A stretch of 64,000 bases of DNA from Gracilinanus agilis (GCF_016433145.1 NC_058133.1:476229058-476293057); one strand, 5' to 3'; shown: positions 1-45,653, counted from the first letter of the stretch. Numbers and translations are program-made. The notes: generated by a model not told the origin, from the sequence alone.

Positions 1-1255
1 ACAAATATAGGACTCCTCAAGAAGACATAAAAACAAATCCAGACGAATGAAGGGACCCTACAACAGGGTGCAGCATTGAAGGTACGTGGGATTGGGGCAT
101 TTCCATTGTTGCGAGGATTATTTAGTTATTAATTTAGTATTAGTTTATATATAGTTTATGTGGACCTAGCAAGAAGGGCTGGAGAATTCCAAGATGCAAT
201 GAAGAAGCAGGAAGTGTCTTCTTGCTCACTGGGAGAGACTCCATGGTGGTTGGGACAAGCAGCAACTGACCCTAGGAGACACCAGTTTACCAGTGATCCT
301 GTGGAAAGACCATCATGCACTTGTGGGAGTTTTTGGTAGAGACTGCTAATCCCAACCTGAGTTGCAGGTCAACTTGGGCTGGGTCAGCTCCCAGAATCTA
401 CCCACCTGGAAGAGTACAGCAGGTGGTCTTGGAGGAGCAGAAACATCACTGGAGTGAGGCTGCACACTACTATGAGGATATCCACTTCGATCCTGCTTTT
501 CTCTGGGCCCTGTCTTGCTTAGGTCTCAGTTAGTGTAGATAAGTCCCTTCCCTGACCCTGGGTTTGTCCTTAGTCTGAAGAGTGTAGTTACCCCTATTCC
601 CATCAACACCATGCTATAAAGAGGTGAAACAGGTCTCACTAAAACATGAGCTGAGCAACCCCCTCCCCCCCCCCACTACCTACAGTGCCAAAGCCAGCGC
701 AAAAGAGTTAGAGCAAGTTTGGGGCACCCATTAAGCCATTGGCAGCTACCAGGGGTCACCAGGGCCTGCTCCTGAGAGCAGCAAGACTTAAGACCCCAAG
801 AGGCTAAAGAACACACGGACTTTGAACACAGACTCTGAGCGCGGGCACGGACATGGATCCTGAGCGCAGGCATGGTCAGGGATCCTGAGCGCAGGCGCGG
901 ACCTTGAGTGGGGACCCAGTGCAGAGGGGTGCATGACTGTGGAAGCAGTGCCCTGAGACTGTTAAAGGAGCTTCAGGCAGAAGAACAAGAAAGGGGACCA
1001 CCAGGAGGCTTGACCCTGAGAACTAGACCTGAGACCTCAAGAGCCTAAAGAGACAGACAGACCCTGGGTGTGAGGATAAAGCTGAGAGGGTGCTGGGCTA
1101 AAAATGGCAAGCCAGACTCAGGAATCCCAGAAGAGAAAGATCAAGAAGAAACCTTTAACACTCAACAACTTTTACACAGAAAAAATCCAGACAACAGAGC
1201 AAACATTAGAGGAGAACAAACAAGTAACCATATCCAAACCTTCCCCCCCAAAAAA
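1..1255 (+). mobile_element. L1 5'UTR and start of ORF1 (3'-truncated), interrupted by a solo LTR
   Basis: GC-rich UTR with ~25-bp tandem units (835-905). ORF1 ATG at 1104 (MASQTQESQKRKIKKKPLTLNNFY). The UTR reads continuously across the LTR (ggggcatttccat|gctataaag). Confidence 0.75.
107..608. mobile_element. ERV solo LTR (~500 bp)
   Basis: TGTTG...CAACA termini with a perfect 4-bp TSD CCAT (103-106 and 609-612). A 4-bp TSD is typical of ERV1. Confidence 0.85.
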
Positions 1256-1400: not shown

Positions 1401-4400
1401 TCTTTCCTTACCTTCTGTCTTAAAATCAAGACTAAGTATTGGTTCCAGGACAGAAGAGTAGTAAAGGCTAGGCAACTGGAATTAAGTGACTTATCCAGGG
1501 TCACACAGCTAGGAAGTATCTGAGGCTAGATATGAACCCAAGGCCTTTTGTCTTCAGGCCAGGTGCTCTATCACTGAGTTACCTTGCTGCCCTATTTCTT
1601 TGCCTTTTCTCTTGAGCCTTTACCACAGGACAGCAGAAGTTTCTTCTCTTCTCTCTCTTCCCAATAACCTATAGCATCTTCAGAAAAACTATTTGCCTAG
1701 TAGGACACATAGTACCTAGTGGGGAGTAGACTCAGTCAATCAAGGCACAAGGCAGGAGTTTTGTGTGTATTGAAAGTCTTAGCCTTGGCTATCAAGCTGC
1801 CCCAAGAGATGCTGTACCATGTCTATCAGGGGAGCAGCATATGGACACAAGAAGAAGAAGATCTCTGGAGCCCTGCAGTCCTATAAGTGTCAAGTGCTTT
1901 AGGTATGTGCATTTCCTCCATGTAGGCCTCTCCTTGGGTACTCTATGTGTACACACCTTCTTCCTCCTGATGCTCCATGTAGTTATAGGAGAATGGGCTC
2001 CAGATTTATGGACAGAAAACTGTGTTTCTCTTCTTCCTAGTTAATAAATGTTCCTAATAATACTGGTTAGTTAATAACTAGTTGCTAGATCCATGTTAGT
2101 AAATGCTTTTGTTTTGAGCTAATTATGCAATATAAAAACAAGTGCACCATTGGGGATTTGTGTGCTGGAATTTTTGTTCAGACCCACCTAATAACTTGAA
2201 TCTAAAATAGCTGATTACTCTGGGAACCTACCAGAAAGTCTGAATTTTGGGAGGCTCTTAGGGGAGTTCTACTCTTCTCCCCAACACTTCACCAAAAGTA
2301 TTTAGCAATAATATAGATCCATTACAACCAAACTCTCACTCTGTGTTACAAAATCCAGTGGCAATGCTATGTATTTGACCAGACCAAACTGTAAAGCAGA
2401 TTTATCCAGAATTCACCTCTTAGTAGCCATGAGTGACTTTAACTATTGGTATATCTGGAATTGGGAAGGACATCATAAGCCACCTATTCCATTTCTTTTT
2501 TTTTTTTTTAACTCTTACCTTCTGTCTTAGAATCAATACCAGGTATTGGTTCCAAGGCAGAAGAGTGGTCAGCACTAGGTAATGTTGGTTAAGTGACCTG
2601 CCCAGGGTCATACAATTGGAAAGTATCTGAGGCCAAATTTGAACAAAGAAACTTTCAATCCATTGAGCTGCCTACATTCCTTTCATTTTAAAAATCAGAA
2701 AAATGAGGTCCATTTGGGTTAATTGACTTGCCAAAGGTTATGAGACGAGTATATTTCAGAGGCAGAATTTGAACACAGGTCCTTTGATCCTGTGCCAGTG
2801 TACCTTCCACTGTACCTTCCTCTCTCTGACCAAAACTGGGTAGCTTGTAAATGCTTGATTTGTTCTAGTTATAATTTAATTCTTCAAAAAGTAAAGGAAG
2901 CAAAAAAAAAAAAAAAGGGAACTGCTATTCTGGACCTGCTTTTTTTTATGCTTTTAATTTTTATTTTTTAGAAAATTTTTCCATGGTTACATGATTCATG
3001 TTCTTACTCTCCCCTCCCACCCCTCTCCAAACCCACCCCCCATAACCAACATGCATTTTTACTGATTTTAACGTGTGTCATTGATCAAAACCTATTTCCA
3101 TATTATTGATAGTTGCCCTGATGTGGTTGTTCAGAGTCTACATCCCCAATCATGTCTACATCAACCCATGTGTTCAAGCAGTTGTTTTTCTTCTGTGTTT
3201 CCACTTCTGTAGTTCTTCCTCTCAATGTGGGTAGCATTCTTTTCCATAAATCCCTCAGAATTGTCCTGGGTTATTGCATTGCTGCTAGTACAGAAGTCCA
3301 TTACATTCAATTTTACCACAGTATATCTGTCTCTGTGTACAATGTACTTCTGGTTCTGCTCCTTTCACTCTGCATCAATTCCTGGAGGTCTTTCCTGTTC
3401 ACATGGAATGCCTCCAGTTTATTATTCCTTTGAGCACAGTAGTATTCCATCACCAGCAGATACCACAATTTGTTTAGCCATCCCCCAGTTGAAAGGCATA
3501 CCCTCGTTTTTCAGTTTTTTGCCACCACAAAGAGTGTGGCTATAAATACTTTTGTACAAGTCTTTTTCCCTATGATCTCTTTGGGGTACAAACCCAGCAA
3601 TAGTATGGCTGGATCAAAGGGCAAGCAATCTTTTAGTGCTCTTTGGGCAAGTTCCAAATTGCCATCCAGAATGGTTGGATCAGTTCACAACTCCACCAGC
3701 AATGCATTAATGTCCCAATTTTGCCACATCCCCTCCAACATTTATTATTTTCCCCTGCTATCATTTTAGCCAATCTGCTAGGTATAAGGTGATACCTCAG
3801 AGTTGTTTTGATTTGCATTTCTCTAATTATTAGAGATTTAGAATACTTTTTCATGTGCTTATTGACAGTTTTGATTTCTTTATGTGAAAATTGCCTATTT
3901 ATGTCCCTTGACCATTTATCAATTGTGGAATGGCTTGATTTTTGGTACAATTGATCTAGCTCCTTCTATACTAGAGTAATTAGACCTCTGTCAGAGTTTT
4001 TTGTTATAAAGATTTTTTCCCCAGTTTGTTGTTTCCCTTCTGATTTTGGTTGCATTGTTTTTGTTTGTACAAAAACTTTTTAATTTAATGTAATCAAAAT
4101 TATTTATTTTACATTTTGTAATTTTTTTCTAACTCTTGCTTGGTTTTAAAATCTTTCCTTTCCCAGAGATCTGACAAGAATACTATTCTGAGTTTGCCTA
4201 ATTTACTTATAGTTTCCTTCTTTATATTCAAGTCATTCACCCATTCTGAATTTATCTTGGTGTAGGGTGTGAGATGTTGATCTAAACCTAATCTCTCCCA
4301 TATTGTTTTCCAATTTTCCCAGCAGTTTTTGTCAAATAGTGGATTTTTGTTCCAAAAGTTCCGCCCTTTGGGTTTATCATAAGCTGCCTTGCTGACATCA

Positions 4401-5273
4401 CTTACCCCAAATCTATTCTACTGATCCACCCTTCTCTCTCTTAGCCAGTACCATATTGTTTTGATAACCACTACTTTATAGTACAACTTAATATCTGGTA
4501 CTGCTAGGCCACCTTCCTTCACATTTTTTTTCATTATTTCCCTTGATATTCTTGATCTTTTGTTCTTCCATATGAACTTTGTTATAGTTTTTTTCTAATT
4601 CAGTAAAAAAGTTTCTTGGTAGTTTGATAAGTATGGCACTAAATAAGTAAGTTAATTTGGGTAAAATGGTCATTTTTATTATGTTAGCTCATCCTACCCA
4701 TGAGCAATCAATGTTTTTCCAATTGTTTAGATCTGTTTTAATTGTTTGGAAAGTGTTTTGTAGTTGTGTTCGTATAATTCCTTTGTTTGTTTTGATAGAT
4801 AGATTCCTAAGTATTTTATATTGTCTAGGGTGATTTTAAATGGTATTTCTCTTTCTAACTCTTGCTGCTGAGATGTGTTGGAAATATATAGAAATGCTGA
4901 TGATTTATGTGCATTTATTTTGTGTCCTGCCACTTTGCTAATGTTGTTGATTATTTCCACTAGCTTTTTAGTTGATTCTCTAGGATTTTTTAAGTAGACC
5001 ATCATATCATCTGCAAAGAGTGATAGCTTGGTCTCCTCATTGAGAATTTTAATACCTTCAATTTCTTTTTCTTCTCTAATTGCTACTGCTAGTGTTTCTA
5101 GTACAATGTTAAATAATAGAGGTGATAATGGGTATCCTTGTTTCACTCCTGATCTTTTTGGGAAGGCTTCTAATTTATCTCCATTGCATATGATGCTTGT
5201 TGTTGGTTTTACATATATACTGTTTATTATTTTTAGGAAAGGTACTTCTATTCCTATACTTTCTAGTGTTTTC

Positions 5274-5599
5274 TTTTTTAAAAAACATTTAATAATATTT
5301 ATTTTTTAGAAAAGTTAACATGGTTACATAATTCATGCTCTTACTTTCCCCTTCACCCCCCTTCAACCCCGCCCCCCATCCCATGGCTGATGCATATTTC
5401 CACTGGTTTTAACATGTGTCATTGATCAAGACCTATTTCCAAATTTTTGATAGTTGCATTGGTGTGGTAGTTTCAAGTCTACATCCCCAATCATGTCCGC
5501 CTCAATCCATGTGTTCAAGCAGTTGTTTTTCTTCTGTTTCCACTCCTGTAGTTCTTCCTCTGAATGTAGGTAGTGTTCTTTTCCATAAGTCCCTCAGAC
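5274..5599 (-). mobile_element. 5'-truncated L1 3' end nested in the larger L1
   Basis: Perfect 15-bp TSD CTTTCTAGTGTTTTC (5259-5273 and 5600-5614); poly(T) tail on the plus strand. Confidence 0.9.
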
Positions 5600-6218
5600 C
5601 TTTCTAGTGTTTTCAATAGGAATGAGTATTGTATTTTGTCACAGGCTTTTTCAGCATCTATTGAGATAATGATGTGATTTTTGTTTGTTAGTTTGTTGAT
5701 ATGGTTAATTATATGGATGGTTTTCCTAATGTTGAACCATCCTTGCATTCCTGGTATAAATCCCACCTGATCATGAAGGATAACCCTCTTGATCACTTGT
5801 TAGAGTCTTTTTGCTAGTATTCTATTTAATATTTTTTTATCTATGTTCATCAGGGAGATTGGACTATAGTTTTCTTTCTTTGTTTTTGGTCTGCCTGGCT
5901 TTGGAATCAGTACCATATTAGTGTCATAAAAGGAATTTGGTAGAACTCCTTCTTTACTTATTATGTCAAATAATTTGTATAGTGTTGGGATTATTTGTTC
6001 TTTGAATGTTTGATAAAATTCACTTGTGAATCCATCAGGCCCTGGAGATTTTTTTCTTAAGGAGTTCTTTGATGGCTTGTTCAATTTCTTTTTCTGATAT
6101 TAGATTATTTAAGTATTCTATTTCTTCTGCTGTTAATCTAAGCAATTTATATTTTTGTAAATATTCATCCATATCACCTAGATTGCTATATTTATTGCCA
6201 TATAATTGGACAAAATAG

Positions 6219-6835
6219 GAGATGGACCACTTCACCTATTTGGGTAGCATAGTCAGCAAGGACGGCGGGGCAGATGAGGACATCAGAAACTGAATCAACA
6301 AAGCCAGACAGGCATTTAACACCTTACAGTCTGTCTGGATCTCCAAAGCACTGTCCCTCGTCACTAAGCTCTGAATCTTCAATACCAACGTAAAGGCCAT
6401 CCTCCTATATGGATCAGAAAGCTGGAGAGTGACGAAAGTCAACACCAACAAACTCCAAGTCTTTGTTAACAGATGTCTGCGCTACATCTTGAACATCAGA
6501 TGGCCTGAAAAGATCTCCAATGCTAGTCTCTGGGAAAGAACAATCCAGTATCCCATTAGTCAGGACATAAAGAAACGTAAGTGGAGATGGATAGGACATA
6601 CGCTACAAAAACCGGAAGACAACGTAGCCAGACAAGCATTGAGCTGGAACCCTTCAGGGAGGAGGAAAATCGGAAGACCAAAACAGACCTGGCGAAGATC
6701 TGCCGAAAATGAAACAAAAACAGTCGGAATGACATGGGCCCAGCTGGGGGAAGTTGCCCAGAACAGAGTCCGCTGGCGTGAGATGGTTGCAGCCCTATGC
6801 TCCTAAGGAGTCAATAGGAATAATAAATAATAATA
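6219..6835 (+). mobile_element. 5'-truncated RTE-clade LINE nested antisense in L1 ORF2
   Basis: [13 protein letters not shown]...LLYGSESW...KWRWIGHTL...GRPKQTWRR...RVRWR C-terminal RTE motifs, (AAT)n tail, and a 17-bp TSD with 2 mismatches (6202-6218 and 6836-6852). Confidence 0.9.
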
Positions 6836-8534
6836 ATAATTGGAGAAAATGGTTTTTGATTGCCTTAATTTCTTCATTAGAGGTGAGGTCTCCCTTTTCA
6901 ACTTTGATATTTTTAATTTGGTTTTCTTTTTTTCCTTTTTTAAGTTAGATTGACCAGTACTTTGTCTATTTTATCTGTTTTTTCAAAGTACCAGCTTCTA
7001 GTCTTATTTATTAACTCAATAGTTCTTTTACTGTTGGTTTTATTAATTTCTCCTTTGATTTTTAGTATTTTACTTTTGTTTTTGTTTGGGGATTTTTAAT
7101 TTGTTCAGTTTCTAGTTTTTTAAGTTGCATGTTCAATTTACTGACCTCTTCTCTTCCTAATTTGTTAATATATGCACTCAATGATATAAATTTCCCCCTT
7201 GGTACTGCTTTGGCTGCATCCCATAGGTTTTGGTAAGAAGTCTCATTGTTGTCATTCTCTTCAATGAAATTATTAATTGTTTCTATGATTTGTTCTTTAA
7301 CTAACTTATTTTGGAGAATCATATTATTTAGTTTCCAATTAGTTTTTGGTTTGCCTCTCCATGCATTCTTATTAATAACTATTTTTATTGCATTATGATC
7401 TGATAAGTTTGCATTTATTATTTCTGCTTTTTTGCATTTGTTTGCCATGTTTCTATGCCCTATTACATGGTAATCTTTGTGAATGTTCCATGTGCTGCTG
7501 AAAAGAAGGTGTATTCCTTTTTGTCCCTATTTATTTTTCTCCATATATCTATTAACTGTAATTTTTCTAGGATTTCATTTACCTCTCCTATCTCTTTCTT
7601 ATTTATTTTTTGGTTTGGTTTATCTAGATCTGATAGGGTAAGGTTCAGGTGTCCTACTAGTATAGTTTTATTATCTATTTCCTCTTTGAGCTCTGCCAGT
7701 TTCTCCTTTAGAAATTTAGATGCTATACCATTTGGTGCATACATGTTGAGTACTGTTATTTCTTCATTGTTTATACTACCTTTTATCAGGATGTAATTTC
7801 CTTCCCTATCTCTTTTAACCAGATCTATTTTAACTTTGGATTTGTCAGAAATCATGATTGCAACTCCTGCCTTCTTTTTCTCAGTTGAAACACAATAGAT
7901 TTTGCTCCAGCCTTTTATTTTTACTTTACATATGTCTACCTGTCTCATGTGTGTTTCTTGTAGACAACATATGGTCGGATTTTGGTTTCTAATCTGCTCT
8001 GCTATTTGCTTCTGTTTTATGGGCGAGTTCATCCTATTCACATTCAGAGTTATAATTATCAACTGTGTATTCCCAGACATTTTGATACCCTCTCCTTGTC
8101 CTGCTCTTTCTTCTTTCACTATTTCCTTCTATATCAGTGTTTTGTTTTTAATCAGTTCCCTATATCCCCTCCCTTATTGTACTTCCCTTTCTCCCCTTTC
8201 CCTTCTTATTCCCCTCTTATTCTGCTTTAGGGTCTTTTTAAGCTACCCCCTTTCCCTCCCTAGTGTTTCTTCCCACCCACCAGTCCTTTTGTTACTCTTC
8301 TACTTCTCTATAGGGCGCAAATCAATTCACTGCCCCAATGGATCTGATTGTTCTTCCCTCTTTAAGTTAATTTCAATGCACTTAAGTATTTCCTCTGTCC
8401 ACTCTCTTTACCCTTCCAGTGTATTGGTCTTCTCCACTGTCCACCCCACATGCTTCTTTATGAAATATAAATTTACTCCATTTTGTCTGTTTTCCCATTT
8501 CTCTTAATATTATCTCCTTTTTTTACCTCTAGTT

Positions 8535-8610
8535 TTATATATATATTTATACACACATATATATGTAAATACACACACACACATATATATGTATATATAT
8601 ATATACACAT
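8535..8610. repeat. (TA)n/(CA)n microsatellite in the L1 inter-ORF region
   Basis: Direct reading. Confidence 0.9.
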
Positions 8611-11600
8611 ATATCTTGACATTTCATCCTATACAGTTTGTCCCTGTTCCCTCTAAGTATACCTCTTCTAGCTACCCTTTTGATAATAACAATTTTTAAG
8701 AGTTACCAATATCTTCTTTTCTTATAGGGATATAAGTCAATTGAACTTATTGGGTTCCTTAAAGAAAAGATTTTTTGGTTTTTTTCCCTTCTCTCTTAAT
8801 TACCTTATAGTGATTCTCTTGAGTTCTGTGTTTGGGAAGCAAACTCTCTGTTTAAGTCCCGTTTTTTCTTTATGAATGCTTGGAAGTCTTCAATTTTGTT
8901 GAATGACCATACTTTCCCCTTTTAAGTCGGGTTCATCTAGAGGATGCCCCAGCTCTGTTCTGTTGTCAGATTTGGTTTTCTGTTCCTTTGGAGCCCTTTG
9001 TCCTTGATTGGTGGTGAAGGGCTTTATGGAGGTCTGGAGCCTTGCTGCTTCTATGCAGCCACATTCCCAGAATTCCTTGTTGATGGTTTCAGATATATCT
9101 CTGGACCTGCTTTTGACCAACATGAAAGTCTTCATCAATGAAGGAAAATGATCAGAACTCTAGAAGGAGATGACCACTCTTAGGATGTGTGACAGAGGAC
9201 AAGAGAAATGTTGGGAACAATTTAATATGCATTCTAGATTTTGAGAGAATGGATTTTAAAGAGTTCAGAGAGAGAATAGGTAAGGATTAATTAACTAAAA
9301 TGAAGTATAATTTTTTTCACCTTTTTTTTTTGTTTTCCCCCCCTCAGTATGTCTAGTATAGAAATTTTTTTCATGATTTCACATATATAATTGATATCTT
9401 ATTGCTGGTTTTCTTAGTGGATGGGATGGGAGGAAGGGAGAAATTTTGGAAATTTAAATTTAAAAAGAAAAAAATGTTAAAAATAAACAAATAATATTAA
9501 AAAAATAAGACTAAATCTCTCCTAAGGATAAAAAAGAATTAATGAATTAAAATTCCATATGGCTTCAGCTCACATCAGGAAAAAGAACTTTTGTTCTAAA
9601 ATTGTTGTCATCTGAACTGTGGCTCTGATTTTCTTAATGCTTCTCTGATTCATCATTAACAACTTGCATTAGAAGACTCATTGTGAACTGTAAACATTCA
9701 CATGGCATGGACCAGAATGTGACACTTGAGACTTATTCTTTCTGGAGAAAGTAGGAAATACCTAGAATTTCTGATTTTTGCTCTCCATCACTTCTTTTGT
9801 TCTTTTATCTTTGCCCTTTATCTCACCCACCAATCAGAGGTTTGTGATAGGAACAGTGTTCTCTGACATATCTTCTTTTTTCCCATCCACAACATGGAGA
9901 AGTTTTATCTAAAAGAAAACACAGCTTTTTCTCCCACTGCCCTCCATCCCCCTCCACTATACTCAGACAACATTTGGTAGGTAGACCCAGAACATAGTTG
10001 TCCTTGGTTTCCCTAATACAGCTTCTTGATCATTAGGGGCCTAAAAGTCCTAGCCACATGGAATCTAGGCCTCTTGTTGAATATATAAAACCACGAGAGT
10101 TGACCAGAAGGAAGAAAGAGAGAACAAAGAAAGAAAAAGAGTCAGAGGTAACAGAACTTCAGATGCATCTAAAAGAAGATGCTAATAAAAACATTCTTTG
10201 TTTGCTGGTTGTTCATTTATTTATTTCCACTTTTTTAAGCTAGGTTGTGTACCTGGCTTGGAGTGAGGAAATCCCAAGTTCAAATCTGACCTCAGATACT
10301 TACTAACTGTGTAATAACCCTGGGCAAGTCACTTTACCCTGTCTGCCTCAGTTTCCCTTTCTGTAAAATAAGCTAGAGAAGGAAATGGCAAGCCACTCCA
10401 GTATCTCTGCCAAGAAAACCCCAAACAGGGTCACAAAGAGTTAGACACAAATGAAATGTCCGAACAAGAACAAAGGCTAAGAATTTTATATAAGAATTTA
10501 CTCCTTTTGAAGCAGCTAGGTGGCGGAGTGGACAGAGACCAAGGAGGTCCTGAGGGTTCAAATGCGGCCTTGGACATTTCCTAGCTGTGTGAGTCACTAA
10601 CCCTAATTGCCTACCCCTTACCATTCTTCTGTCTTGGAACTGATACTTGTATCGATTCTAAGACAGAAGGTAAGGATTTTTTTTTTAAAGATTATACTCC
10701 TTTGATAGTTATGTTTTTATTTAGTTATTACATTATAACAAATTATTTTAAAGACATGCACAGAAGATAGAAGTCAGTCAACTAGTATCTATTAAGTGCC
10801 TATATTATAAGCCAAGCATTATGCTAAGTACTAGAAAGGCAAGGGCAGGTAATAGAAAAGCAATACAAGAGAGATCTGGTCTGCTTAAGGAGCATTATCA
10901 AGAACTATAAAGCCCAGAAGGTGAATGCTAGGGACAACAAAGCTAGAATGAGTTCAAGAGGAAACTCTAAGAAAGGATGGATTTGCTGTCGGAGCAGATG
11001 GGGCGATGATAAGAGGTTACCATAAAAGACAGAGAGAAAGCACAACTACTCAGTTATTTTTGCATCTATTTTCTCTGTGAAGAAGGTTAACGGAGAGCTG
11101 AGACCCAAAATTAATGAAACATTAAAAGACTGAATTCAAGTCACTAGGCTATGGCAAATATATGCTAGGGGGCTGAAAGAACTGCTGGATCTCATTGCTG
11201 AACCACTGTCAGTGATCATTTAAAACTTATGTAATATAGAAATGCTACAAGACTGAAGAAGCACAAATATTCTGATTTTCAATAAGGAAATGAGGGTGAA
11301 ATCTGTAAAAGTTGAGAAGCTTGACTTTAATTCATGATGAAATTCTGGAATGTAAGGGATTCCTTTTTTGGAAATTTAGAAAGGAAAACATTGGTCAGTA
11401 GCAGTTAGCAGAGGTTTATCAATAATAGGTCAAGCCAGATTAACTTTGTTTCCTTTTTTGACAGGCTCCTAGTCTGGTAGATGAGGAAAATCTTGTAGAC
11501 ACAAAATACCTAAATTTCAACAAAGGATAGGTCAAAATTTCTCAAGTGGTTCTTGAAGACAAGATGTTGAGAGGTGGGTTAGATGATAGTATAGATACAC

Positions 11601-17001: not shown

Positions 17002-17581
17002 TTTTTTTTTTTTTTTAGATTTGAATATTTTATTTTTTTAGAAAAATTTTCCATGGTTACATGATTCTTGTTTTTACTTTCCCCTTCACCCCCCCCTTCA
17101 CATACTCCCCATATCCAATGCACATTTCCACTGGTTTTAACATGTGTGATCAATCAAGACTTATTTACATATTACTGATAGTTGCATTGGTGTGGTCATT
17201 TCGAGTCTACATCCCCAACCATGTCCGCATCAACCCATGTGTTCAAGCAGTTGTTTTTCTTCTCTGTTTCCACTCCTGCAGTTCTTCCTCTGAATGTGGG
17301 TAGCGTTCTTTTCCAAAAATCCCTCAGAATTGTCCTGGGTCATTGCATTGCTGCTAGTACAGAAGTCCATTACATTCGATTTTACCACAGTGTATCAGTC
17401 TCTACGTACAATGTTCTTCTGGCTCTGCTCCTTTCGCTCTGCAACAATTCCTGGAGGTCTTTCCAGTTCACATGGAATTCCTCCAGTTTATTATTCCTTT
17501 GAGCACAGTAGTATTCCATCACCAACAGATACCACAATTTGTTCAGCCATTCCTCAATTGAAGGGCAGACCCTGGTTTTCC
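17002..17581 (-). mobile_element. L1 3' end inserted into a SINE1-type element (16830-17635)
   Basis: 16-bp TSD ACTCAGTATCAATTCT (16986-17001 and 17582-17597). Confidence 0.85.
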
Positions 17582-20170: not shown

Positions 20171-23100
20171 TTCAACAGTCAACAATGAGGTAAGGTAACG
20201 AAAATTCTAACCCAGACTTAATAAGGGAAGCTTACTGTTCTCTTCAGAATGTTTATTCTTTCTGCTTCTACTTTCTTGCTTCCTTTAACTGAAAATGTTT
20301 TCTCTGAAGTTACCAAGCATCTTTTTTTTTTTAAAACCCATACCTACTGTCTTAGAATCAATGCTGTGTATTGGTTCTAAGGCAGAAGAGTGTTAAGGGC
20401 TAGGCGATGAGGTTTAAGTGACTTGCCCAGGGTCACACAAAGCTAAAAAGTTATCTGTGGCCAGATTTGAACCCAATAACCTTTTAAAGTCTAAATCAAA
20501 TTGTCCCATCTCATTCTTCATGCTTCTTGACCTCTCTGAAATTTCTGACATATTTTCTTGAACATTCTTCCTTGGTATTCTTTTATCTCTTGGTTTCCAT
20601 GATGCTGATCTCTCCTGGTTCTCCTATATAATTGACAGCTCTTTTTTCAGGCTCCTTTACTAGTTCATGATCTATCTGCCTCCCACTTCCTAACCATGGG
20701 TGTTTAGGCTTTATCTTGGGCTCTCTTCACTATTATCTCTATGCAAATGACTCCCAGATTTATAAAGCCAGCCCTAAAAAATCTCCTGAACTTTAGTCCC
20801 ATGTTGCCAATTGCCTGTTGGAAATCTCTACGATAAGCATCCCTTCAATATCTCAAATTTGACATTTCTAAAACTCATTTTCCTCCCTAAATCTATCCCT
20901 TCTCCCAACTTTCCTATTTTTCTTTTTAAATAAACCCTTATCTTCTGTCTTAGAATCAATACAAGCATCTGTTCCAAGACAGAAGACTGCTAAGGGTTAG
21001 GCAATGGGGGTTAAGTGATTTGCCCATGGACACATAGCTAACCAGATTTGAATTCAGGACCTCCCGACTCCAGGCTTGGCATTCTATACACTGAGCCACC
21101 TAGGTTCCCCTTCCTTATTTTTTTTTTAAAAACCCTTAACTTCTGTGTATTGGTTCCTAGGTGGAAGAGTGGTAAGGGTGGGCAATGGGGGTCAAGTGAC
21201 TTGCCCAGGGTCACACAGCTGGGAAATGTCTGAGGCTGGATTTGAACCTAGGACCTCCCTTCTTCTAGGCCTGACTCTCAATCCACTGAGCTACCCAGCT
21301 GCGCCCCCTTATTTTTCATAAAGCAACACCACATTCTGAGTCACATAGGTTTGCAACCTTAGGATCATCCTCGACTTTACCCTTTTTTTTTTTTTTTAAC
21401 CTAATAGTCAACCAGTTCCCAAGTCTAATAGGATAAAATTAAAACTCTCTGGTGTGGCACTTAAGGTTCTCTACAATCTGGCTCCCACCTACCTTTCCCA
21501 CCTTATTTCATATTATTACTCTTCATGTATAATAGTAAATAGATTTTTATACTGGAGATGGCTCTCCTGTAAATATAAAAGCCACGAGTAAGAGAAAATG
21601 ATCACAAATGATGAGCCCATATATGGAAAATGTATGGAGGAACAATGTATAGCTCCAGCACCCCAAGGCTTCTCTCCTAATTTCCCCATGGATTTCCTAC
21701 TGGGCAAGATATCTTTTGGCTGAGAATAATTGCTCTTCTGGACTCACTGGGTTTGCTCTCTGTAAGAAACACTGTTTTACCAGTTGACTGTAGTCTACTC
21801 TTACTCCAGCTTCTGGCTCAACCGAAGTGCTGGCTTGGATATGTCTATGCCCTTCCAGAAAGAATCAGACCTTTTCCCTAGGGTAAGTAATAAGCTTCCC
21901 CAATGCTGTTTCCCTATGGTCTTGACTCTGAGGCCTTCCAGCTTCCAAGCAGTAGGACCCCAGTTCCAGGCGCCAAACTCTTCTCAACTCTTTCTACATA
22001 GAAGGTTGGGGTTTTTCAAGAAAAATCCTGGAACTCTCTACTGAGGGAACAAACAAGAACCTGCATGCATACATGCAGATTTGCTGATAAATGAGTTCCA
22101 GAGATCAAGTTATTTTCCCTAAATCACACAAAGAGTAAGTGACGGTCAAGGCTCAGTCCAGTGCTCTTTGCACTGAACCACACTGTTGTCCAAAAAGGGA
22201 TTAGATTTGTTTAGCTTGGCCCCAGAGGGTAACTCTAGGAGCAAGAATTTTAAGTTCCAGAAAGGAAGGTATGCTCCATCTGGGGAAAGACTATCTAACA
22301 ACCAAAATATCATAATAGGGAATTCCTTAGGAGGCAGTGAGCTCACTTTCATTGGACCTCTTTAAATGAAAATTGGATAGATGCTTCTGGGTAATTGTTG
22401 TACCTCTTAATATTTGACTAGTTGAGGTACAGTTTTACTAAATAAGAGCAAAGTCTTTTCTACCTCTTCAGTTCTGGAATACCCCAGCTCCTGCTCTTCT
22501 TATATCCTGCCTACACCCTCTACAAAGGCTTTCCCCAATAGCACAAACCATTTTCTCAGTTCTCTCTCTACTTGGCCCATACACACCCAAATTCTCTTCC
22601 ATTTATAATGCTGTTCCATTATACTAAAGGATTCCTGTAATCTTTTAAAAGTTTAATTAATTAAGAAGACTTTCCATGGTTCCATGATTCATGTTCTTTC
22701 TCTCCCCTCCTCCCACCCCCATCCTGTAGCCAACGAGCAATTCCACTGGGTTTTACATGTGTCATTGATCAAGACCTATTTCCATATGCAATTTTATTTT
22801 TGCCTTAAGTTGCGTTTTAGGGGATGTTGGTGGGATCAATCCATACTGATCAAGGTATGCAGTGTATGGTGGACAAGTGTTATCCTTAGTGCAGAAAAGG
22901 GAAGATCAATACTATAGAGTGGAATTCATGGAAAGATAGGTCTAGAACTGGACTTTATACAAATGGAGATGAGAAAGCATTTCACATAGTGGAAACCCAA
23001 AGGGAGAAGTTAAAGTATGAAGTTAGGCACTGAGGATGGGATAATCTTGGAGCTGAAGAGGACCTCAGAGATCATCTAGATCACAATTTCCCAGCCTAAT

Positions 23101-28016: not shown

Positions 28017-30004
28017 AGTAATTAGACCTTTGTCAAGAGTTTTTTGTTATATTTTCCCCCAACTTGTTGATTCCCTTCTAATTTTGGTTGCATTGGTTTT
28101 GTTTGTACAAAACCTTTTTAATTTAATGTAATCAAAATTATTTATTTTACATTTTGTAATTTTTTCTAACTCTTGCTTGGTTTTAAAATCTTTCCTTTCC
28201 CAGAGATCTGACAAGTATACTATTCTGTGTTCCCCTGATTTACTTATAGTTTCCTTCTTTATATTCATGTCATTCATCCATTCTGAATTTATCTTGGTGT
28301 AGGGTGTGAGATGTTGATCTAAACCTAATCTCTCCCATACTGTTTTCTAATTTTCTCAGTAGTTTTTGTCAAATAGTGGATTTTTGTCCCAAAAGCTGGG
28401 CTCTTTGGGTTTATCAGACTGTCTTGCTGAGGTCACTTTCCCCAAGTCTATTCCACTGATCCTCCCTTCTGTCTCTTAGCCCGTACCATATTGTTTTGAT
28501 GACCACTGCTTTATAGTACAGTTTAAGATCTGGTACTGCTAGGCCACCTTCCTTCACATTTTTTTCATTATTTCCCTTGATATTCTTTTTTTTTTAAACC
28601 CTTAACTTCTGTGTTTTGGCTCCTAGGTGGAAAAGTGGTAAGGGGGTCAAGTGACTTGCCCAGGGTCACACAGCTGGGAAATGTCTGAGGCTGGATTTGA
28701 ACCTAGGACCTCCCATCTCTAGGTCTGACTCTCAATCCACTGAGCTACCCAGCTGCCCCTCCCTTGATATTCTTGATCTTTTGTTCTTCCAAATATATAT
28801 ACATATATATATATATATATATTTTGTTCTCAAATATATAAGGAGCTAAATCAATTGTACAAAAAATCAAGCCATTCACCAATTGATAATTGGGCAAGGG
28901 ACATGAAGAGGCAATTTTCAGATAAAGAAAGAAATCAAAACTATCCATAAGCACATGAAAAAGTGTTCTAAATCTCTTATAATTAGAGAAATGAAAATCA
29001 AAACAACTCTGAGATACCACCTCACACCTAGCAGAATAGCTAACATGACAGCAAAGGAAAGTAATGAATGTTGGAGGGGATGTGGCAAAATTGGGATATT
29101 AATGCATTGCTGGTGGAGTTGTGAACTGATCCAACCATTCTGGATGGCAATTTGGAACTATGCCCAAAGGACTTTAAAAGACTGTCTGCCCTTTGATCCA
29201 GCCATAACACTGCTGGGTTTATATCCTAAAGAGATCATAAGGAAAAAGACACGTACAAAAATATTTATAGCTGTGCTCTTTGTGGTGGCAAAAAACGGAA
29301 AAAATGAGGATATGCCCTTCAATTAGGGAATGGCTAAACAAATTGTGGTATCTGCTGGTGATGGAAAACTATTGTGCTCAAAGGAATAATGAATTGGAGG
29401 AATTCCATGTGAATTGGAATGACCTCCAGGAATGCAGAGTAAAAGGAGCAGAACCAGGAGAACATTATACACAGAGACTGACATACTGTGGTAATCGAAT
29501 GTAATGGACTTCTCTACTAGCAGCAATACAATGATCCAGGACAATTCTGAGGGACTTATGAGAAAGAATGCTATTCACATTCAGAGGAAGAATGTAGTAG
29601 AAAACAGAAGAAAAACAACTGCTTGAACACATGGGTTGATGTGGGTATGATTGGGGATGTAGACTCTAAATGAACACCCTAGTGCAGGGGTCGGCAACAT
29701 ATGGCTTTCTACAGGAGCCATAAAGTCAATTTTTTTCAGGCGCTGTTATAGGAGCGCGTGCTGTGAGCACTGTACGGTTCTCACGAAATTACATTTTAAA
29801 AAATGTGGCGTTTATGGCTCTCCGTGTCAAAAAGGTTGCCAACCCCTGTCCTAGTGCAACTATCAATAATATGGAAATAGGTCTTGATCAGTGACACATG
29901 TAAAACCCAGTAGTAGAAATGCACATCAGCTATGGGGAAGGGGGGCGAGGGTAGAGAAAGAACATGAATCATGTAACCATGGAAAATTTTTTTCTAAAAA
30001 ATAA
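28017..30004 (+). mobile_element. 5'-inverted (twin-primed) L1: inverted arm 28017-~28790, sense 3' arm ~28820-30004
   Basis: 13-bp TSD AAAATACAAACTG (28004-28016 and 30005-30017). The two arms are contiguous in L1 coordinates; (TA)n lies at the junction. Confidence 0.88.
29685..29848. mobile_element. hAT (Charlie-type) MITE, 164 bp, in an L1 3'UTR
   Basis: TIRs CAGGGGTCGGCAAC / GTTGCCAACCCCTG; 8-bp TSD CCCTAGTG/TCCTAGTG. Confidence 0.88.
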
Positions 30005-31079
30005 AAAATACAAACTGTAAAGGGCCTGATTTTTAAGCCCTCTACTGTGCAATTCTGGTCTCATTTCACATTTTTTTCCTTCTGATACTCTACATTCCAG
30101 ACAAACTGGACGCCTCCTTCATCTGTAGCTGTGCTCACACTCCCTCCTCCTCCTCCTCTCTTTGCCTTTTTGAATTCTCTTCCCTGAGTCAGCTTGGGTG
30201 GTGCCTTCCTTGAAACCTTCCCTGATCCCCAGCATTCTACCTCTCCCAATTTTCCCAAGGAGGGTTTGTCTGATGTCTCCTCTGTGCACATCATTCCCCA
30301 ACCTGGGCTATACTTACCCAGGCACATGCCAGTCCCCATCCCCAGCAGAACAGACCCTGGAGGGAGGGGAGAAATTTTTTTATCCTCTCTTGCACGATGC
30401 AGGCCAGTGCCTCAGACAATCCTGGCTCTCCAGTGCTCTGAGACTCCGTTTGGGGAACCTTGTTTCTCAGTATCATGCTGTCCCCTGCTGGTCTGCTGTG
30501 GTCTTACACTTGGGGTTCAGGTGGATGCCCAGCTGCCTCACTGCCACTGAGGTGGTGAAGCACCAAAAGGAACCATAGTTCCCTCCCGCTATCCCTGTGG
30601 GCACTAGAAGCCTCCCTGCCTTCTCTTGCCCCTTCCTTGAAGCAGGTAACAGGTTAGGAGAGGGAATGGAGTCAAGCTAGGTATCGCCAGGCTCTGGCCC
30701 CCAAATTCCTCTCCAGGAAGACTCATTAACTGGTTTCTTCACTTAAAGGATTCTGAAAATGAAGAGGAAACTTGTTCCCTGCCTGCTTTGTTAACCCTTC
30801 CTACAGCATTCACTCAGCCTCTGGTCGTCGAAGGACAAGGAAGCCACTGTCTCCTAAGGCCAAACACCAGAAACAAAGGGATGTGGGGCTTGGGAGAACA
30901 AGGTGCGAATCAGCCAGAGAGAGGCCAGGAGAATCAGGATACCTGAAAAGTGGGGAGGGGGGGGTCGTTGTCCCCCCTCACCCAGGCCCGTTGACTTTCT
31001 TCCTTCGTCGAAGTCCTTGGAGTCCTGGACCTCCTGCTGCCGCCCATGGGGGGGGACGGGTTCGGCGCTGGGGGAAGAG

Positions 31080-34483: not shown

Positions 34484-37400
34484 TCAGAGTTTAAAGATTT
34501 CATCTTCCTGGTCCCGTAAGGTGGCTGTCCTTGTTGTTCGAGTCAGGGGTACAGGGCCTAGTACTGCCCGTTGCTGCTTTCGGGGAGAAGCCAAGTGAGG
34601 GTGTAGATCCTCCCCCGGTACCCTGTAGGTAATGAAGGAAAAAGCAATCAGGAAGGGAGGGAGGGAAGGAACAGGCATTTATTCAGAACCTACTATGTGC
34701 CAAACTGTGCTATGTGCTAGACACTTTACAAATTTCTCACTTGAAGGAAGGACTCTGGGGGTAACTAGAGATCTAGGAAGCTGCCTTAGTAACACTGCCA
34801 TGTCAGTCCAAGGCTGAACTTTCCTTGCCCCTGAAGAATAGAATAATAAGAGGAACTTGAAACCCAAATCCCCTATACTCCAAAGATGTATTCTAGCTTT
34901 GCTTCTGAAAATCAAATTTTAAGCTGGAAGGGGTCTTTAAGACCATCTAATCCATTTCCTCCATTTTCAAGAGAAAGAAAGTCAGGTCCCCCCACAGCAT
35001 TTTATGGCTAAGACCCAGATTCCCATCTCCTGATCCCCAATCTGGAGCCCTTCAACAACTGCTTCTATTGAGTGTTAGAGAGGCTGTTCAGAAACACCAA
35101 AGACTTACCCACTCTCGCCTTTCTTCAGTTTCTTGACAGCAGCCTTCTTTGACAGACTGATTTGTGAGTCAATCTTCTTAAGGAAGTCAGTAGCAGAGAG
35201 GTCATGGCTGGGTATGGGGAGGTCCTGGTCACTGCTGGCTTTTTCTTCTTTTTTCCTCAAAACTGAGGGAGATTCAGCTCCACCTTGACTCAATAGCATT
35301 TCTTCCTCTCTTTCTTCTTCTTCCTCAGAATCTAGCCCATTGAATAATCCTCGAGGCTCAGTCAGAATAGGAATATAGAGAGTTTTCTTGAGGAAGATGG
35401 AGTCATTAGTATAAAGACGATTAGCACGCTTAATCTGTTCCATCTTAGGGGGAGAAAAGGAAGGGGCACCAGATTAATAAAAGCAAAAATGTGGTTTACA
35501 ATTTTAAATAATTTTTAACCCTTACTTTCTGTCTTAGAATCAATACTGAGTATTGGTTCCAAAGCAGAAAAGTGTAAGGGCTAGGATATGAGCCCAAGGA
35601 TCACCTAGCTAGTAAGTTTCTGAGGCCATATTTGAACCCAGGATCTCCTGTTTCTAGGCCTGCCTCTCAATTCACTGAGCTACCTAGCTCCTACTGCTTT
35701 ACATGATACTAACAACTATCCTGAGGAGTAAAGAGGGCAGGTATAATCCTTGTTTTATAGATTAATATGCTGAGGCCTACTTAAAAGATCATGACTTACC
35801 AATGAACACAAAATTAGCAAATTCTAATAAACTCAGGGCTTCTTACTGACAAATCTTGTACTCTGCAACATTTATTATTAATACTTACATGAATTTATCA
35901 GCATTTTTCTATCATATACACTGGTTAAAGTGGAGCATGATCATCCATTAGGAAGGTAGTCCTTAGAATTATGTCTCTAAGAATATAGAGAGACCATTCT
36001 GTCCAACTTCTGGAAACTTGATATATAACCAAGGAATTTCTATCCTAGGGGGCATCTAGGTGGCCCAGAGAATTGAGAACCAGGCCAAGACTTAGTTCTG
36101 GGTTCAAATTTGACCTCAAACATTTCCTAACTGTGTGACCCTGGGCAGGTCACTTAATGCCCATTGCTCTTCAGCTTTGGAACCAATACACAGTATTGAT
36201 TCTAAGAAGGAAGGAGAGAGCTTATTTAAAAAGAAAAAAACTATTTCTATTCTAGCATAAAACTATCATAGTAGAGTTGAATAACAGATCATTGGACTTA
36301 TACCATCAGGCATACCTGAATGTGAATCCTGCCTCAGACATTTACCAGATGTGAGACCCTGGGCAAGTCATGTCTTTACTTTCAGCCCCAGTTCCTTCAT
36401 CTATAAAATGAAGATAATAATAGCACCTACCTCACAGGGTTGGGAGGATTAAATAGGATAACCTATAAAATGTTTCAAAAGCCTTAAAGTACTCTAGAAT
36501 GCTGTTATTATCATTATTAAAAACACATCATTCAAATAAACTGGAGGAATTCCATGCAAATTGGAGAGACCTCCAGGAAGTGATGCAGAGTGAAAGGAGC
36601 AGAACCAGAAGAACATTGTACACAGAGACTGATATACTATGGTAAAATCAAATGTAATGGGCTCCTGTACCAACAGCACTGCAATGACACAAGACAGCTC
36701 TGAGGGATTTATGGTAAAGATGCTACCCACATTCAGAGGAAGGACTGCAGGAGAGGAAACATATAAGATAAACAATTGCTTGAATGCATGGACTGAGGCG
36801 GACATGAATGGGAAATAGACCCTGAACATGGACACTTGTTACAACCAGTGGAAATGTGCGTTGGCCATGGGTGGGGGGAGAGGGGGGTGAAGGGGAAAGT
36901 AGGGGCATAAAGTATGTAAACAGATTAAAAATGAATATTAATAAATGTCTAAAAAAACCACATCATTCAGAACAACGAAAAATTACCATGAATTTGTATG
37001 GTATGGTTTGTTTTTTTTTTTGCTTTTTTAGTCTTAACCTTCAATCCTAGAATCAATATTGTGTATTGGTTCCAAGGCAGAAGAGAAATAAGGGCTAGGC
37101 AATTGAGATTAAGTATCTTGCCTACATTACATAACTAGAAAGTCTCAGGACCCCCACCCCACCCCCACCCCCAGGTCTAGCTCTTAATCCACTGAGCCAT
37201 CTAGCTGCCATTTATTCTTCAAAGTGCTTTTACTGTTATCTCATTTTGTTTTCAGACAAAAAAAAAATGAGTTCACAGTGATATAATTGTCTCCTCAGGA
37301 CCACCCTTCTGGGAGGGAAAACACTGTTCCTATTTGACTCTAAGCAAAGACAATTTTAGTGTCTCAGCCAAAGCATCAGAGGCTGGACTCCAGACAACCT

Positions 37401-41900: not shown

Positions 41901-44900
41901 GTTGACTGCCCACCGTGCAGGGAAGAAGCACTTGGCTAGTAAGTTAAAGGGTGAAAAGCAGAGAATTATGTTAACAGAGCCTTCCTGAGCCATGCTGATA
42001 GCCCCTTCTCTATCAGGCCTGAAAGATTTCTATGGCAAGAAGCAACAGTGGAAAAGAGAAGAACAGAATCCAAAACAGCAGGAAGAATGGAGAACCGAGA
42101 AGTCAGGGGACCAGGTAACTGAGAAAGGGAGATTTGTCCCAGGAAGAGCTTCCATCCCAGGAGATTTGAAGTATCTTATTCCCCTAGGTCTAAGAGTATT
42201 GGTTTATCTCTTCTTTCCATCAGGCTCCTCTGCTGACCCAGACTCGTTTAATCACCCAAAGTGCCCTACGCAGAGCTCCAAATTATAACAGTTGCTGTCG
42301 ACGGCAGAAGAACAGGTAATTTTGGATAGAAGAGAGAAAGAAACAAAGTAAAATGAGAGGATGGAGGCAGGAAAATGGCAGCAGTGATTATAGAAGAACA
42401 AGGAAATTAGAGGAATAAGATAGTGAGAAAAGAGAAGGCTCAATAGGGAGAAATCCGTTTAGAAGCATTTATTACTAGACTAAAAACCCGACAAGGACAG
42501 GGATTTTGTCTTAACTTTCTATTTCCTCCAGCATCTAGCACAGAGGATGCATAAAGTTAAATGAAAAATTTTAGTAACAAAAAGATGTGAAGACAAGGGA
42601 ATATCAAAGGGCGAGAATATGGGAAGAATAATCGTAGTACAAACTTTGGGTATGGGTAGGCAAAAGGATTAATAGTAGTTGCTTCTGAGATAGGAAAAAT
42701 AGAAGGTTTCTTCCTGGTATGTCAGGGAGAGAACATGACTGATTCTATCACTCCCCAACATTGTAAAAGAAAAAATCCATTACAAATTTGTATAGTTATC
42801 CACATTACTCATGTCCAGAACAAAAAAAGAAAGAAGAAAACACCTCAGTTTGTACTCCCAGGTCATCTCTCTCCATCTGGAGAAAGATAGCATGTTTCAG
42901 CATGAGTCCTTTGGAATTTTGTTTTGTCATTGTGTCCATCAGAATCTTTCATTGCTGATTATCTTCATGATATTGCTGTTATATAAATAAATTCTCACTT
43001 CACTTTGCAACAGTTCATACAAGTCTTCCCAAGCTTTTCTAAAACTATCCACTTCATCATTTCTTACAGAATGATAATATTCCATCAAATTCATATACCA
43101 TAACTTGTTTAGCCATTCCCTAATGGATGGGCAGTTTCCAGTCCTTTGCTCCCACAAAAAAAAATGTTACTATAAATATTTTTAGATATGAGTTCTTTTT
43201 CTTTTTCTTTGATCTTTTTGGAATATAGACCTAGTAGCAGTAACCCTGGGTCAAAGGTATGTACAGTTTAATAGCTTTTTAGGCATAGTTCCAAATAGCT
43301 TTCCATAATGGTCAGACTAGTTAACAGCTCTACTAATATCATATTAGTGTATCTGTTTTCCCAAATCCCCTCTAACATTTATCATTTTCCTCTGTTGTCA
43401 TTTTAGCTAATGAGATGGTGATGTTTTAATTTTCATTTCTCTAGTAATTATTGATTTACAGCAGTGATGAGCAAACTTTTTAAAGAGGGGGCCAAAGGAA
43501 AGGAAATGCTCATCTGTCAGTCTGTTTCTAAAGCAATTCTTTTGAAGTTTCATTGTATTGTATTATATCCTACTCATTGTATTCGTCAGATTAGGGATAA
43601 TGTTGTGCAGCCCTTGCGTGACCAGATAGAACATTTCAGGGGGCTGCATCTGGCCCACAGGCCGTAGTTTGCCCATCACTGATCTAGAGCAATGATGGTG
43701 AGCCTTTTAGAAACCAAGTGCCCAAACTGCAATTCTCACACCGCATATGATCTACCCCACCTCACCCCTTACCCCAGATAGGGGAGGGAGGAAGCGCTCC
43801 CATTGGGCTGTTGAGCAGAGTGGGGGGGCAGGTCATGTGAGAAATGTCCTCAGATAGGAGTGGAGAGGGGAAAGGGAGCAGCCTCCTTGAGCATGCTCTG
43901 ATACACATGCCATAGGATCGCCAACATGGATTTAGAGCTTATTTTCATATGCCTATTGACATCTTGGGCTTATTTCTCTGCAAACTGCTTATTCATATCC
44001 TTAGACCATTAGTAAGGGAATGGCTCTTAAGTCTTGAAAATTGAGACTCATTTCCCTGTTTATTTTAGAAATGAGACCTTTAGTACCACCTCACACCTAG
44101 CAGATTGGCTAAAATGAAAGAAGGGGAGAGTAATAAATGTTGCAGGGGATGTGGCAAAATTGGGACATTAATGCATTGCTGGTGGAGTTGTGAAATGATC
44201 CAACCATTCTGGCTGGCAATTTGGAATTATGCTCAAAGGGCTATAAAAGAATGCCTGCCCTTTGATCCAGCCATACCATTGCTGGGTTTGTACCCCAAAG
44301 AGATCATAGATAAACAGACTTGTACGAAAATATTTATAGCTGCACTTTTTGTGGTGGAAAAAAACTGGAAAATGAGGGGATGCCCTTTAATTGGGGAATG
44401 GCTGAACAAGTTGTGGTATATGCTGGTGATGGAATACTATTGTGCTAAAAGGAATAATAAACTGGAGGAGTTCCAGGCGAACTGGAAAGACCTCCAGGAA
44501 CTGATGCAGAGTGAAAGGAGCAGAGCCAGAAGAACATTGTACACAGAGACTGATATACTGTGGTAAAATCGAATGTAATGGACTTCTGTACTAGCAGAAA
44601 TGCAATGACACAAGACAGTTCTGAGGGATTTATGGTAAAGAACACTACCCACATTCAGAGGAAGAACTGCAGGAGAGGGAAACATAGAAGATAAACAATT
44701 GCTTGAATGCATGGGCTGAGGCGGACATGATTGGGGATGTAGACTCGAAACTACCACACCAATGCAACTATCAACAATATGGAAATAGGCCCTGAACAAG
44801 GACACAAGTTACAACCAGTGGAAATGTGCGTTGGCCATGGGTGGGGGGAGAGCGGGGAGTGAAGGGGAAAGTACGGGTATGAAGCATGTAAACAGGTCAA

Positions 44901-45653
44901 AAATGAATATTAATAAATGTTTAAAAAAAAAAAGAAATGAGACCTTTATAAGAGAAATTTGATGCAAAGATTTTTTCATTTCCTTCTTTTCTTTTAATTT
45001 TAGTAGCTTTGTTAGTTCAAAAGCTTTTTCATATTATATACTCAAAAGAATCCATTTTATCTCTTCTTTATCTCTTGTTTGGTTATGAATTCATCCCTTC
45101 CCCATAGATCTGATAGGTAATTTTTTCTGTGTTCCATATTTTGCTTATGATACCTTTATGTCTAAATTGTGTGCCCATTTGGAGTTTATCTTGGTATATG
45201 AATACCTTAAACTTTGTTCCTTCTCACTCAGACCAGAAACTCCTTCGCCCTCAGCTCCCCACCCTTCATTCAGGCCCCCACAGATTGATGAACCCTCAGA
45301 CAAGAAGGCTGGTACAGCACCTGAGTCTGGGGGTGATATAAAGACTAAGGATTCAGCAGCAGCCCCAACCCCTGTACCCTTGAGTCCTGCCAGACGAAGA
45401 GCATTGGACCATTATCTGACTCTGCGCAGGTGAGTGGCCTCATGCATTGCTTTTCTTCCTCTTAGTCTTGTTTTCTTCTCTACTGCCTTCTCTCTCTCTC
45501 TCATCACCCTCATCCCTCATTCTGACCAAACGTATTTTCTTTGATCTTTTCAGCTCTGGTTGGCTCCAGGATGGAAGAGGTGGATGGGTAAAAGATAAGA
45601 ATGTAGAATTTGATTCTGATGAAGAGGAACCCCCAGATCTACCCTTAGATTGA
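38988..45653 (+). CDS. SCNM1: Sodium channel modifier 1 (zinc-finger minor-spliceosome factor); join(38988..39038,41517..41587,41850..41938,42017..42114,42224..42315,45232..45429,45554..45653), 232 aa
   Basis: MSFKREGDDWSQLNVLK|KRRVGDLLASYIPEDEALMLRDGR|FACAVCPHRPVLDTLTMLTAHRAGKKH (C2H2)...EFDSDEEEPPDLPLD*. All introns GT-AG; 699 nt in frame; AATAAA at 45685 and 45862. Confidence 0.96.
39678..40452 (-). mobile_element. ERV solo LTR in SCNM1 intron 1
   Basis: TGTAAAG...TTTTCACA termini; minus-strand CATAAAAG (~40026-40033) and AATAAA (39759-39764). Related to the LTR at 13169; it splits an older SINE/L2 tail. Confidence 0.75.
43462..43681. mobile_element. hAT MITE with OposCharlie1(OC1)-like TIRs, 220 bp
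   Basis: TIRs CAGTGATGAGCAAACT / AGTTTGCCCATCACTG; 8-bp flanks ATTTACAG / ATCTAGAG. Confidence 0.85.
43690..43929. mobile_element. Second hAT MITE (different family), 240 bp, directly adjacent
   Basis: TIRs CAATGATGGTGAGCCT / AGGATCGCCAACATGG; 8-bp TSD ATCTAGAG / ATTTAGAG. Confidence 0.82.
44083..44932 (+). mobile_element. Younger 5'-truncated L1 nested in the older L1
   Basis: Perfect 16-bp TSD AGAAATGAGACCTTTA (44067-44082 and 44933-44948). The ORF2 C-terminus is open for 153 codons (CCRGCGKIGTLMHCWWSC). Confidence 0.92.

Follow-up and report, generated by a model that had tools for sequence, protein, structure and literature searches.

Does an L1 whose leader runs straight into the last codons of ORF1 record the splicing of a marsupial L1 RNA, or a loss of sequence that only resembles it? 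The question is raised by a minus-strand element at 2944-9099 of a 64,000-nucleotide stretch of the Gracilinanus agilis genome (NC_058133.1:476229058-476293057), the whole of which we refer to as the window. An initial annotation had read this element as a copy of a spliced RNA that lost ORF1 and kept ORF2. In human L1, an RNA of this kind, SpORF2, is formed by a splice from 97 to 1837 of L1.3; it yields functional ORF2p and drives Alu (Belancio et al., PMC2896524). Spliced integrants of human L1 (SpIREs) amount to ~2% of full-length L1PA1-6, include the classes SpIRE97/622, 97/790 and 97/976, and are dead on arrival; those with a damaged ORF1 need ORF1p in trans (Larson et al. 2018, PMC5860796).

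Results

One insertion encloses the leader piece and the L1 body

The minus-strand L1 with its leader-to-late-ORF1 junction is a real structure. Direct reading of the sequence shows it to be flanked on both sides by a perfect 15-nt target-site duplication (TSD), AAAAGCAGGTCCAGA, with the 5' copy at 9114-9100 and the identical 15-mer abutting the other end of the element at 2943-2929. The 3' end itself (2944-3099, minus strand) is 86-91% identical to other L1 3' ends in the window and closes with a short A-rich tail, and the insertion target was TTTT/G on the bottom strand. The element thus carries the L1 retrotransposition hallmarks seen in SpIREs, namely TSDs, an A tail and an endonuclease-type target, and these together argue for a single event of target-primed reverse transcription that enclosed both the leader piece and the L1 body. 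The initial annotation was right about this TSD-bounded frame and about the position of the junction, 8919/8918, where we read ...GACTTAAAAG|GGGAAAGTATGG.

Along the L1 strand (minus in the window), a 181-nt segment of L1 5'UTR, or leader, at 9099-8919 ends in ...GACTTAAAAG and is followed by the last 37 codons of ORF1 with the stop (GKVWSFNKIEDFQAF...SRESL; 8918-8805). Next come an inter-ORF spacer of ~720 nt (8804-8081), recognized from the sequence and from alignment to a related copy, L001, and then ORF2, whose limits of 8080 and 3100, from Pfam and the ORF list, are approximate. Within the spacer, a (TA/TG)n microsatellite has expanded to ~99 nt (8513-8611); it is absent from L001. ORF2 is complete in extent but dead. 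An endonuclease piece is retained at 7466-8119 (Pfam Exo_endo_phos, E 3e-9), as are reverse-transcriptase pieces at 5518-5796 and 4730-5146 (Pfam RVT_1, E 5e-16 and 2e-5), while many stops and frameshifts break the frame and the longest open piece in the ORF list is 218 aa. With a nested insertion as well, the ORF2 first described as full-length is full in extent, with both domains, and not intact.

The nested retro-insertion lies inside the reverse-transcriptase region of ORF2 on the minus strand and occupies 5259-5614 with its duplications. Self-BLAST and reading of its ends resolve a 326-nt unit (5274-5599), resembling an L1 3' end, with an A tail and its own 15-nt TSD, GAAAACACTAGAAAG (5600-5614 and 5259-5273). 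It is 84% identical to the 3' end of its host L1 and to at least 6 other sites in the window, and like units of ~300-340 nt occur at ~17024-17328, 22661-22787, 29546-30018, 36687-36948, 44608-44933 and 57163-57495. The ~330-nt unit may represent either a SINE that ends in an L1 tail or a favoured class of short truncations. The host L1 is a single decayed copy with no function of its own.

Could the junction have been created by the assembly, through a mis-join of repeats? Among the matches listed, from 21,703 Logan contig pieces that included runs guessed to be RNA, no contig bridges 8919, and the one exact contig covers only 9027-9250. That contig nevertheless passes from the unique flank 72 nt into the element, one run contains 76% of the sampled words of 8700-9400, and the perfect TSDs frame the unit as a whole. 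Given both sides of this evidence, we regard an assembly artefact as very improbable indeed. The flank at 9110-9250 is also covered by contigs from a second organism, in one DNA run and one run guessed to be RNA; over 141 nt they show 12 differences and 3 gaps, so a fairly close relative exists in which presence or absence of the insertion could be scored.

The breakpoint in ORF1 lies on an acceptor-like site

Downstream of the junction, translation reads directly into the end of ORF1. A frame, KGKVWSFNKIEDFQAFIKKKRDLNREFASQTQNSRESL, spans 8921-8805 and closes with a stop; from 8918 to 8805 the reading is GKVWSFNKIEDFQAFIKKKRDLNREFASQTQNSRESL and the stop, opened by GGGAAAGTATGG. The 38 residues of this frame form the C-terminus of marsupial L1 ORF1p: hmmsearch matched them at E 9e-14 over model positions 322-358 of 358, with a protein profile HMM that was built from 60 natural marsupial ORF1p sequences and served for detection only. 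A phmmer search of 1.8 billion representatives returned ORF1 fragments, the best of which (P0001) is 89% identical, and a word search placed the tail in the family of Monodelphis domestica L1 ORF1p. The late-ORF1 identity originally given to this stretch is thereby confirmed.

Two observations from the protein searches concern other sequences. Further short ORF1 fragments from ENA assemblies (P0002, P0004, P0008-P0010) also point to host DNA in metagenomes. Separately, an NCBI protein of Monodelphis domestica annotated as an MHC class II alpha-chain-like isoform (P0107) starts with an L1 ORF1 C-terminal domain (PF17490; 84% identical to P0003 over 42% of that query), which is either an exonised L1 or a gene-model error.

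The course of an uninterrupted ORF1 above this point can be read from L001, a 715-nt contig of the ENA metagenome assembly ERZ27260065, which carries host DNA. This natural ORF1-continuous copy reads ...CAGACTATATTCTTTCAG|GGGAAAGTATGG, and BLAST aligns it with 8920-8612 of the window at 89% and with 8512-8405 at 92%. Homology begins at L001 base 291, the A of the junction AG, equivalent to window position 8920; for the upstream 290 nt of its ORF1, BLAST found no counterpart in the window. Logan contigs from four runs were also compared. Matches that stop at 8920 came from three of these runs (125, 221 and 19 contigs); beyond that point, read along the L1 strand, the contigs have ...ACTATCCAGCAAAACTGACTATATTCTT(G/T)C ahead of the common AG. 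L001 and these hundreds of ORF1-continuous contigs match the element below 8920 and differ from it above, so that the AG at 8919-8920 (minus strand) is common to both sides of the junction, an overlap of 2 nt.

Parental-type copies (L001 and the Logan contigs) read CTGACTATATTCTT(G/T)CAG|GGGAAAG at the breakpoint. Judged from these ORF1-continuous copies, the segment missing from our element ends with CTGAC, which fits the branch-point consensus, then a pyrimidine-rich stretch and CAG|G; that is, it ends in AG at a site that looks like a splice acceptor. The initial annotation had expected a deleted segment that begins with GT and ends with AG, and the terminal AG is indeed found in both L001 and the Logan contigs, with the 2-nt overlap just described. 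The acceptor that it had given, TTCCAG|GGGAAAG, was close and had its AG exactly at the breakpoint; the copies in fact read TTCTTGCAG|GGGAAAG or TTCTTTCAG|GGGAAAG, and they part from the window exactly at 8920. Within ORF1 the site falls in the codons ...TIFLQ|GKVW and leaves 37 codons before the stop.

We ranked this site with a 3' splice-site matrix that is approximate and that therefore gives rough ranks. Across L001 and the retained L1 body, the breakpoint came 2nd of 6,658 positions, which include 534 AG sites. In a second related L1, L002 (described below), the homologous site GACTGACCATATTCTTTCAG|GCAAAG was the best of the 232 AG sites in the whole 5'UTR and ORF1, scoring 5.6 vs 2.1. 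A random breakpoint would seldom land on the acceptor-like site, and CAG|G is where one would expect a splice within the element's 5' half to be made.

These ranks bear on the explanation that the deletion arose without splicing and that the acceptor match is a coincidence. While the L1 RNA was being inserted, AG microhomology may have let reverse transcriptase skip along it from late ORF1 to the leader; or ~2 kb may have been lost later from a full-length insertion through replication slippage or microhomology-mediated repair. A 2-nt AG overlap like that seen here is what such a process would leave behind, and the nested insertion and the microsatellite indicate that the element is old enough for secondary events. 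The GT donor demanded by splicing is putative, and a second copy of the junction was seen neither among the listed contigs nor in the 10 ORF1-tail protein fragments (0 of 10). However, a random 3' breakpoint would be this acceptor-like at only about 2 in 6,658 positions, and the breakpoint coincides with the single best acceptor in the 5' half of L002. Moreover, the 5' piece starts in the promoter-proximal leader and ends in AAG, as does human SpORF2. On balance, deletion without splicing appears somewhat unlikely.

The 5' piece is a promoter-proximal segment of an L1 leader

The 181-nt segment (9099-8919) belongs to a multi-copy repeat. In the best DNA run, the summed contig depth reached 20,000-157,000 over 8944-9069, vs ~28 in the unique flank, and in the second organism's run the depth of the segment likewise lay far above that of the flank. 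At 8923-8943, just before the junction, the summed depth is below that of the rest of the segment. Within the window, the segment has no second copy.

Its nature is indicated by L002, a 2,533-nt contig (JAJPYO010000209.1, GCA_021204895.1) that is filed under a Bacteroidales MAG and is host contamination of it. L002 is a marsupial-type L1 5' half, with leader and complete ORF1 (P0080), and is the only related element with a whole 5'UTR and ORF1 that we obtained; it was judged to be non-human because its ORF1p is of marsupial type and shares 57% identity with the opossum protein. Between bases 39-63 of the segment and L002 359-383, on the same strand, 23 of 25 positions agree (E 2e-6). The match sits within AGGAGCCAAGATGGCGGCATAGAAGCAGCAAGG, a YY1-box-like motif ~1.1 kb upstream of the L002 ORF1 start, and the segment carries a degenerate motif of the same kind (...GGGAATGTGGCTGCATAGAAGCAGCAAGG...). 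A longer local alignment of the two scored 60, against a mean of 37 for shuffled sequences, of which 1 in 300 reached that score. Other opossum copies read ...GGGAAGATGGTGGTG before CATAGAAGC, with a loose end at 9053, and are closer still to L002; some copies run on unlike the window upstream of 9053.

The match to the L002 5'UTR beside a YY1-box-like motif indicates that the 181 nt are the promoter-proximal part of an L1 leader. By this match the element would begin within the L1 5'UTR, close to or at the point where transcription starts. Human L1 begins with a very similar YY1 box, and the motif in the segment presumably resembles both the human L1 5' end and the N-terminus of human ORF1p. 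The view that the element keeps part of its L1 5' end was thus correct as to kind, and its length is 181 nt, not the ~150 nt first given. The L002 leader itself has two YY1-box-like motifs, at 348 and 950, 602 nt apart.

Other identities for the segment were considered and rejected. Rfam gave no match to a known RNA. As an ORF1 C-terminal region the segment scored no better than shuffles, and as an ORF1 start with upstream read-through it was not significant, with or without frameshifts. As an ORF1 coiled coil it gave a pairwise score of 52 with P0069 (0 of 400 shuffles), a result discounted on account of an empty profile search and the more than 100 proteins tried. By shuffling controls or by profile search, the segment showed no significant similarity to ORF1p.

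The donor side of the junction

The retained leader ends in ...TTAAAAG, an exon end of the AAG type. We infer a GT donor after this end from a weak pointer, the alignment to L002. In semi-global alignments of the segment to the L002 leader, 89 of 100 scoring schemes ended at ...GGAACCCATCGCAGCAG|GTCTGG, and ...CAG|GTCTGG is the only AG|GT within 176 nt downstream of the conserved core of L002. The terminal part of the alignment is weak, with 15 of the last 26 bases identical (58%). When the last 56 nt of the segment were aligned alone, they ended at L002 615, followed by TG, and the alignment was not significant (109 of 500 shuffles score as well). As a donor, CAG|GTCTGG of L002 is a mediocre candidate, 5th among 49 GT sites by an approximate matrix. 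Searches of JGI metagenomes, GTDB genomes and IMG/VR found no opossum L1, word searches gave no matches, whether made with the N-terminal region of ORF1 or with the ORF that spans the junction, and the listed Logan contig matches contained no loose end on the donor side.

The initial annotation had also taken support from a donor, AAG|GTACGT, at 79-87 in the 5'UTR of another L1 in the window, at what it called a comparable position. This support falls away: the possible leader at 1-1103 has no significant similarity to the 181-nt segment, and its 5' end is cut by the start of the window, which leaves no basis for comparing positions. A match by eye of window 1-51 to the segment was rejected as well, since 60 of 500 shuffles score as high.

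This other element, on the plus strand at 1-1400, is the 5' part of another L1 family. Its ORF1 starts at 1104 (+) with MASQTQESQKRKIKKK..., 51% identical to residues 1-49 of P0090, and given this start, window 1-1103 may be leader that continues beyond the start of the window. Near 1250 the ORF1 is cut off by a long (CTTT/CCTT)n simple repeat.

If the donor did not lie in the same element as the acceptor, the copy would be a chimera of two RNAs or elements. A transcript begun in one L1 leader, or a host transcript that contained a leader fragment, could have been spliced into the ORF1 acceptor of another, downstream L1, or reverse transcriptase could have switched template from a 5'-truncated L1 RNA to a leader-containing RNA. 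Chimeras of L1 formed by cis- or trans-splicing, ligation and template switching are documented (10.1101/2025.02.02.635956). The lower summed contig depth at 8923-8943 fits such an origin, and no evidence ties the 181-nt segment and the body to one source copy. Yet both parts are L1, in the same orientation and in natural order, which makes a single-element origin simpler; and in the spliced variant of a chimera the same acceptor is still used, with only the location of the donor differing. We hold a chimeric origin to be improbable.

Discussion

We propose, with a probability of about 0.6, that the L1 at 2944-9099 arose when a spliced L1 RNA was retrotransposed, which would make it a SpIRE of the 5'UTR-to-late-ORF1 ('SpORF2-like') type. 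An L1 transcript would have begun near the normal start, close to the YY1-box-like motif. A putative donor ~150 nt further down the leader, after the exon end ...TTAAAAG, would then have been joined to the acceptor ...CTGACTATATTCTTGCAG|GGG, giving an RNA that lacked nearly all of ORF1 and kept the spacer and ORF2. Insertion of this RNA by target-primed reverse transcription at a TTTT/G site would have produced the 15-nt TSD, and the copy would later have decayed as it acquired a nested insertion, a microsatellite and many stops. The splicing itself, the use of a GT donor and the supply of ORF1p in trans are steps that we infer.

Several features of the sequence favour splicing. Both parts lie within one target-primed event, with a leader piece that begins beside a promoter motif and ends in AAG; the breakpoint falls, by rough scoring, on the acceptor-like site that ranks first in the 5' half of a related L1; and the layout parallels human SpORF2 RNA. 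Against splicing, the 2-nt AG overlap is equally expected from a microhomology-mediated jump or deletion, the structure is known as a single copy, and the placement of the donor on L002 rests on a weak terminal alignment. The case was also chosen for its AG junction, a selection effect that counts against splicing. The origin from spliced RNA put forward initially thus retains the single TSD-bounded insertion, the acceptor-like breakpoint, the leader nature of the 5' piece, its AAG end and the SpORF2 layout, and loses the donor at 79-87.

A broader claim would be that marsupial L1s regularly make an ORF2-only spliced mRNA, using an acceptor within the conserved ORF1 codons T-I-F-(L/F)-Q|G/A. 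Opossum L1s carry this motif, as does L002, where it holds the best acceptor-like site of the 5' half. Such splicing would be independent of the human 97/1837 splice, a self-limiting splice site would be preserved by coding constraint, and the very abundant marsupial SINEs could draw ORF2p from the RNA. We consider this doubtful, and a spliced ORF2-only RNA that feeds SINEs in the Gracilinanus agilis genome is speculation.

In L1.3 coordinates, ~28 codons of ORF1 remain after the human acceptor at 1837, as against 37 after the opossum site (FLQ|GKVW). The two acceptor sites are therefore probably not homologous, and the event, if real, was probably convergent and not inherited. Convergent and conserved splicing had both been entertained for this locus; conservation is now unlikely.

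Our literature search found no paper linking SpIREs with marsupials, and to our knowledge no SpIRE-type scar is known outside eutherians. If the donor is confirmed, the element would be the first. It would also be a scar of the late-ORF1 'ORF2-only' type, whose human counterpart is reported only as RNA in the papers cited here. ORF1-deleting L1 splicing would then be present in lineages separated by >150 million years, and opossum germline RNA-seq could be searched for a concrete junction.

Among known systems, human SpORF2 shares the layout: 100-200 nt from the start of the leader run directly into the final few tens of ORF1 codons, so that ORF1 is lost and ORF2 kept. SpORF2 is documented as RNA in human, whereas the opossum case is known from a genomic copy only, and the donor lies ~80 nt after the YY1 box in human, as against a putative ~150 nt after the YY1-like box here. 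Human SpIREs are TSD-flanked integrants that begin at the 5' end of L1 and are missing an internal stretch with splice sites at its ends, a layout that our element would share. However, in the human classes the acceptor lies within the 5'UTR or at the start of ORF1 (976), while the opossum copy would have been spliced into late ORF1; and the human classes rest on many independent copies and RT-PCR, compared with one copy and a putative donor here. Chimeric L1 insertions formed by template switching or splicing, such as U6/L1, Alu/L1 and exon/L1 (10.1101/2025.02.02.635956), likewise consist of a sense 5' piece joined to a 5'-truncated L1 within one TSD-bounded insertion. In our element, by contrast, the 5' piece is an L1 leader, and the breakpoint, instead of marking an arbitrary truncation, coincides with the best acceptor.
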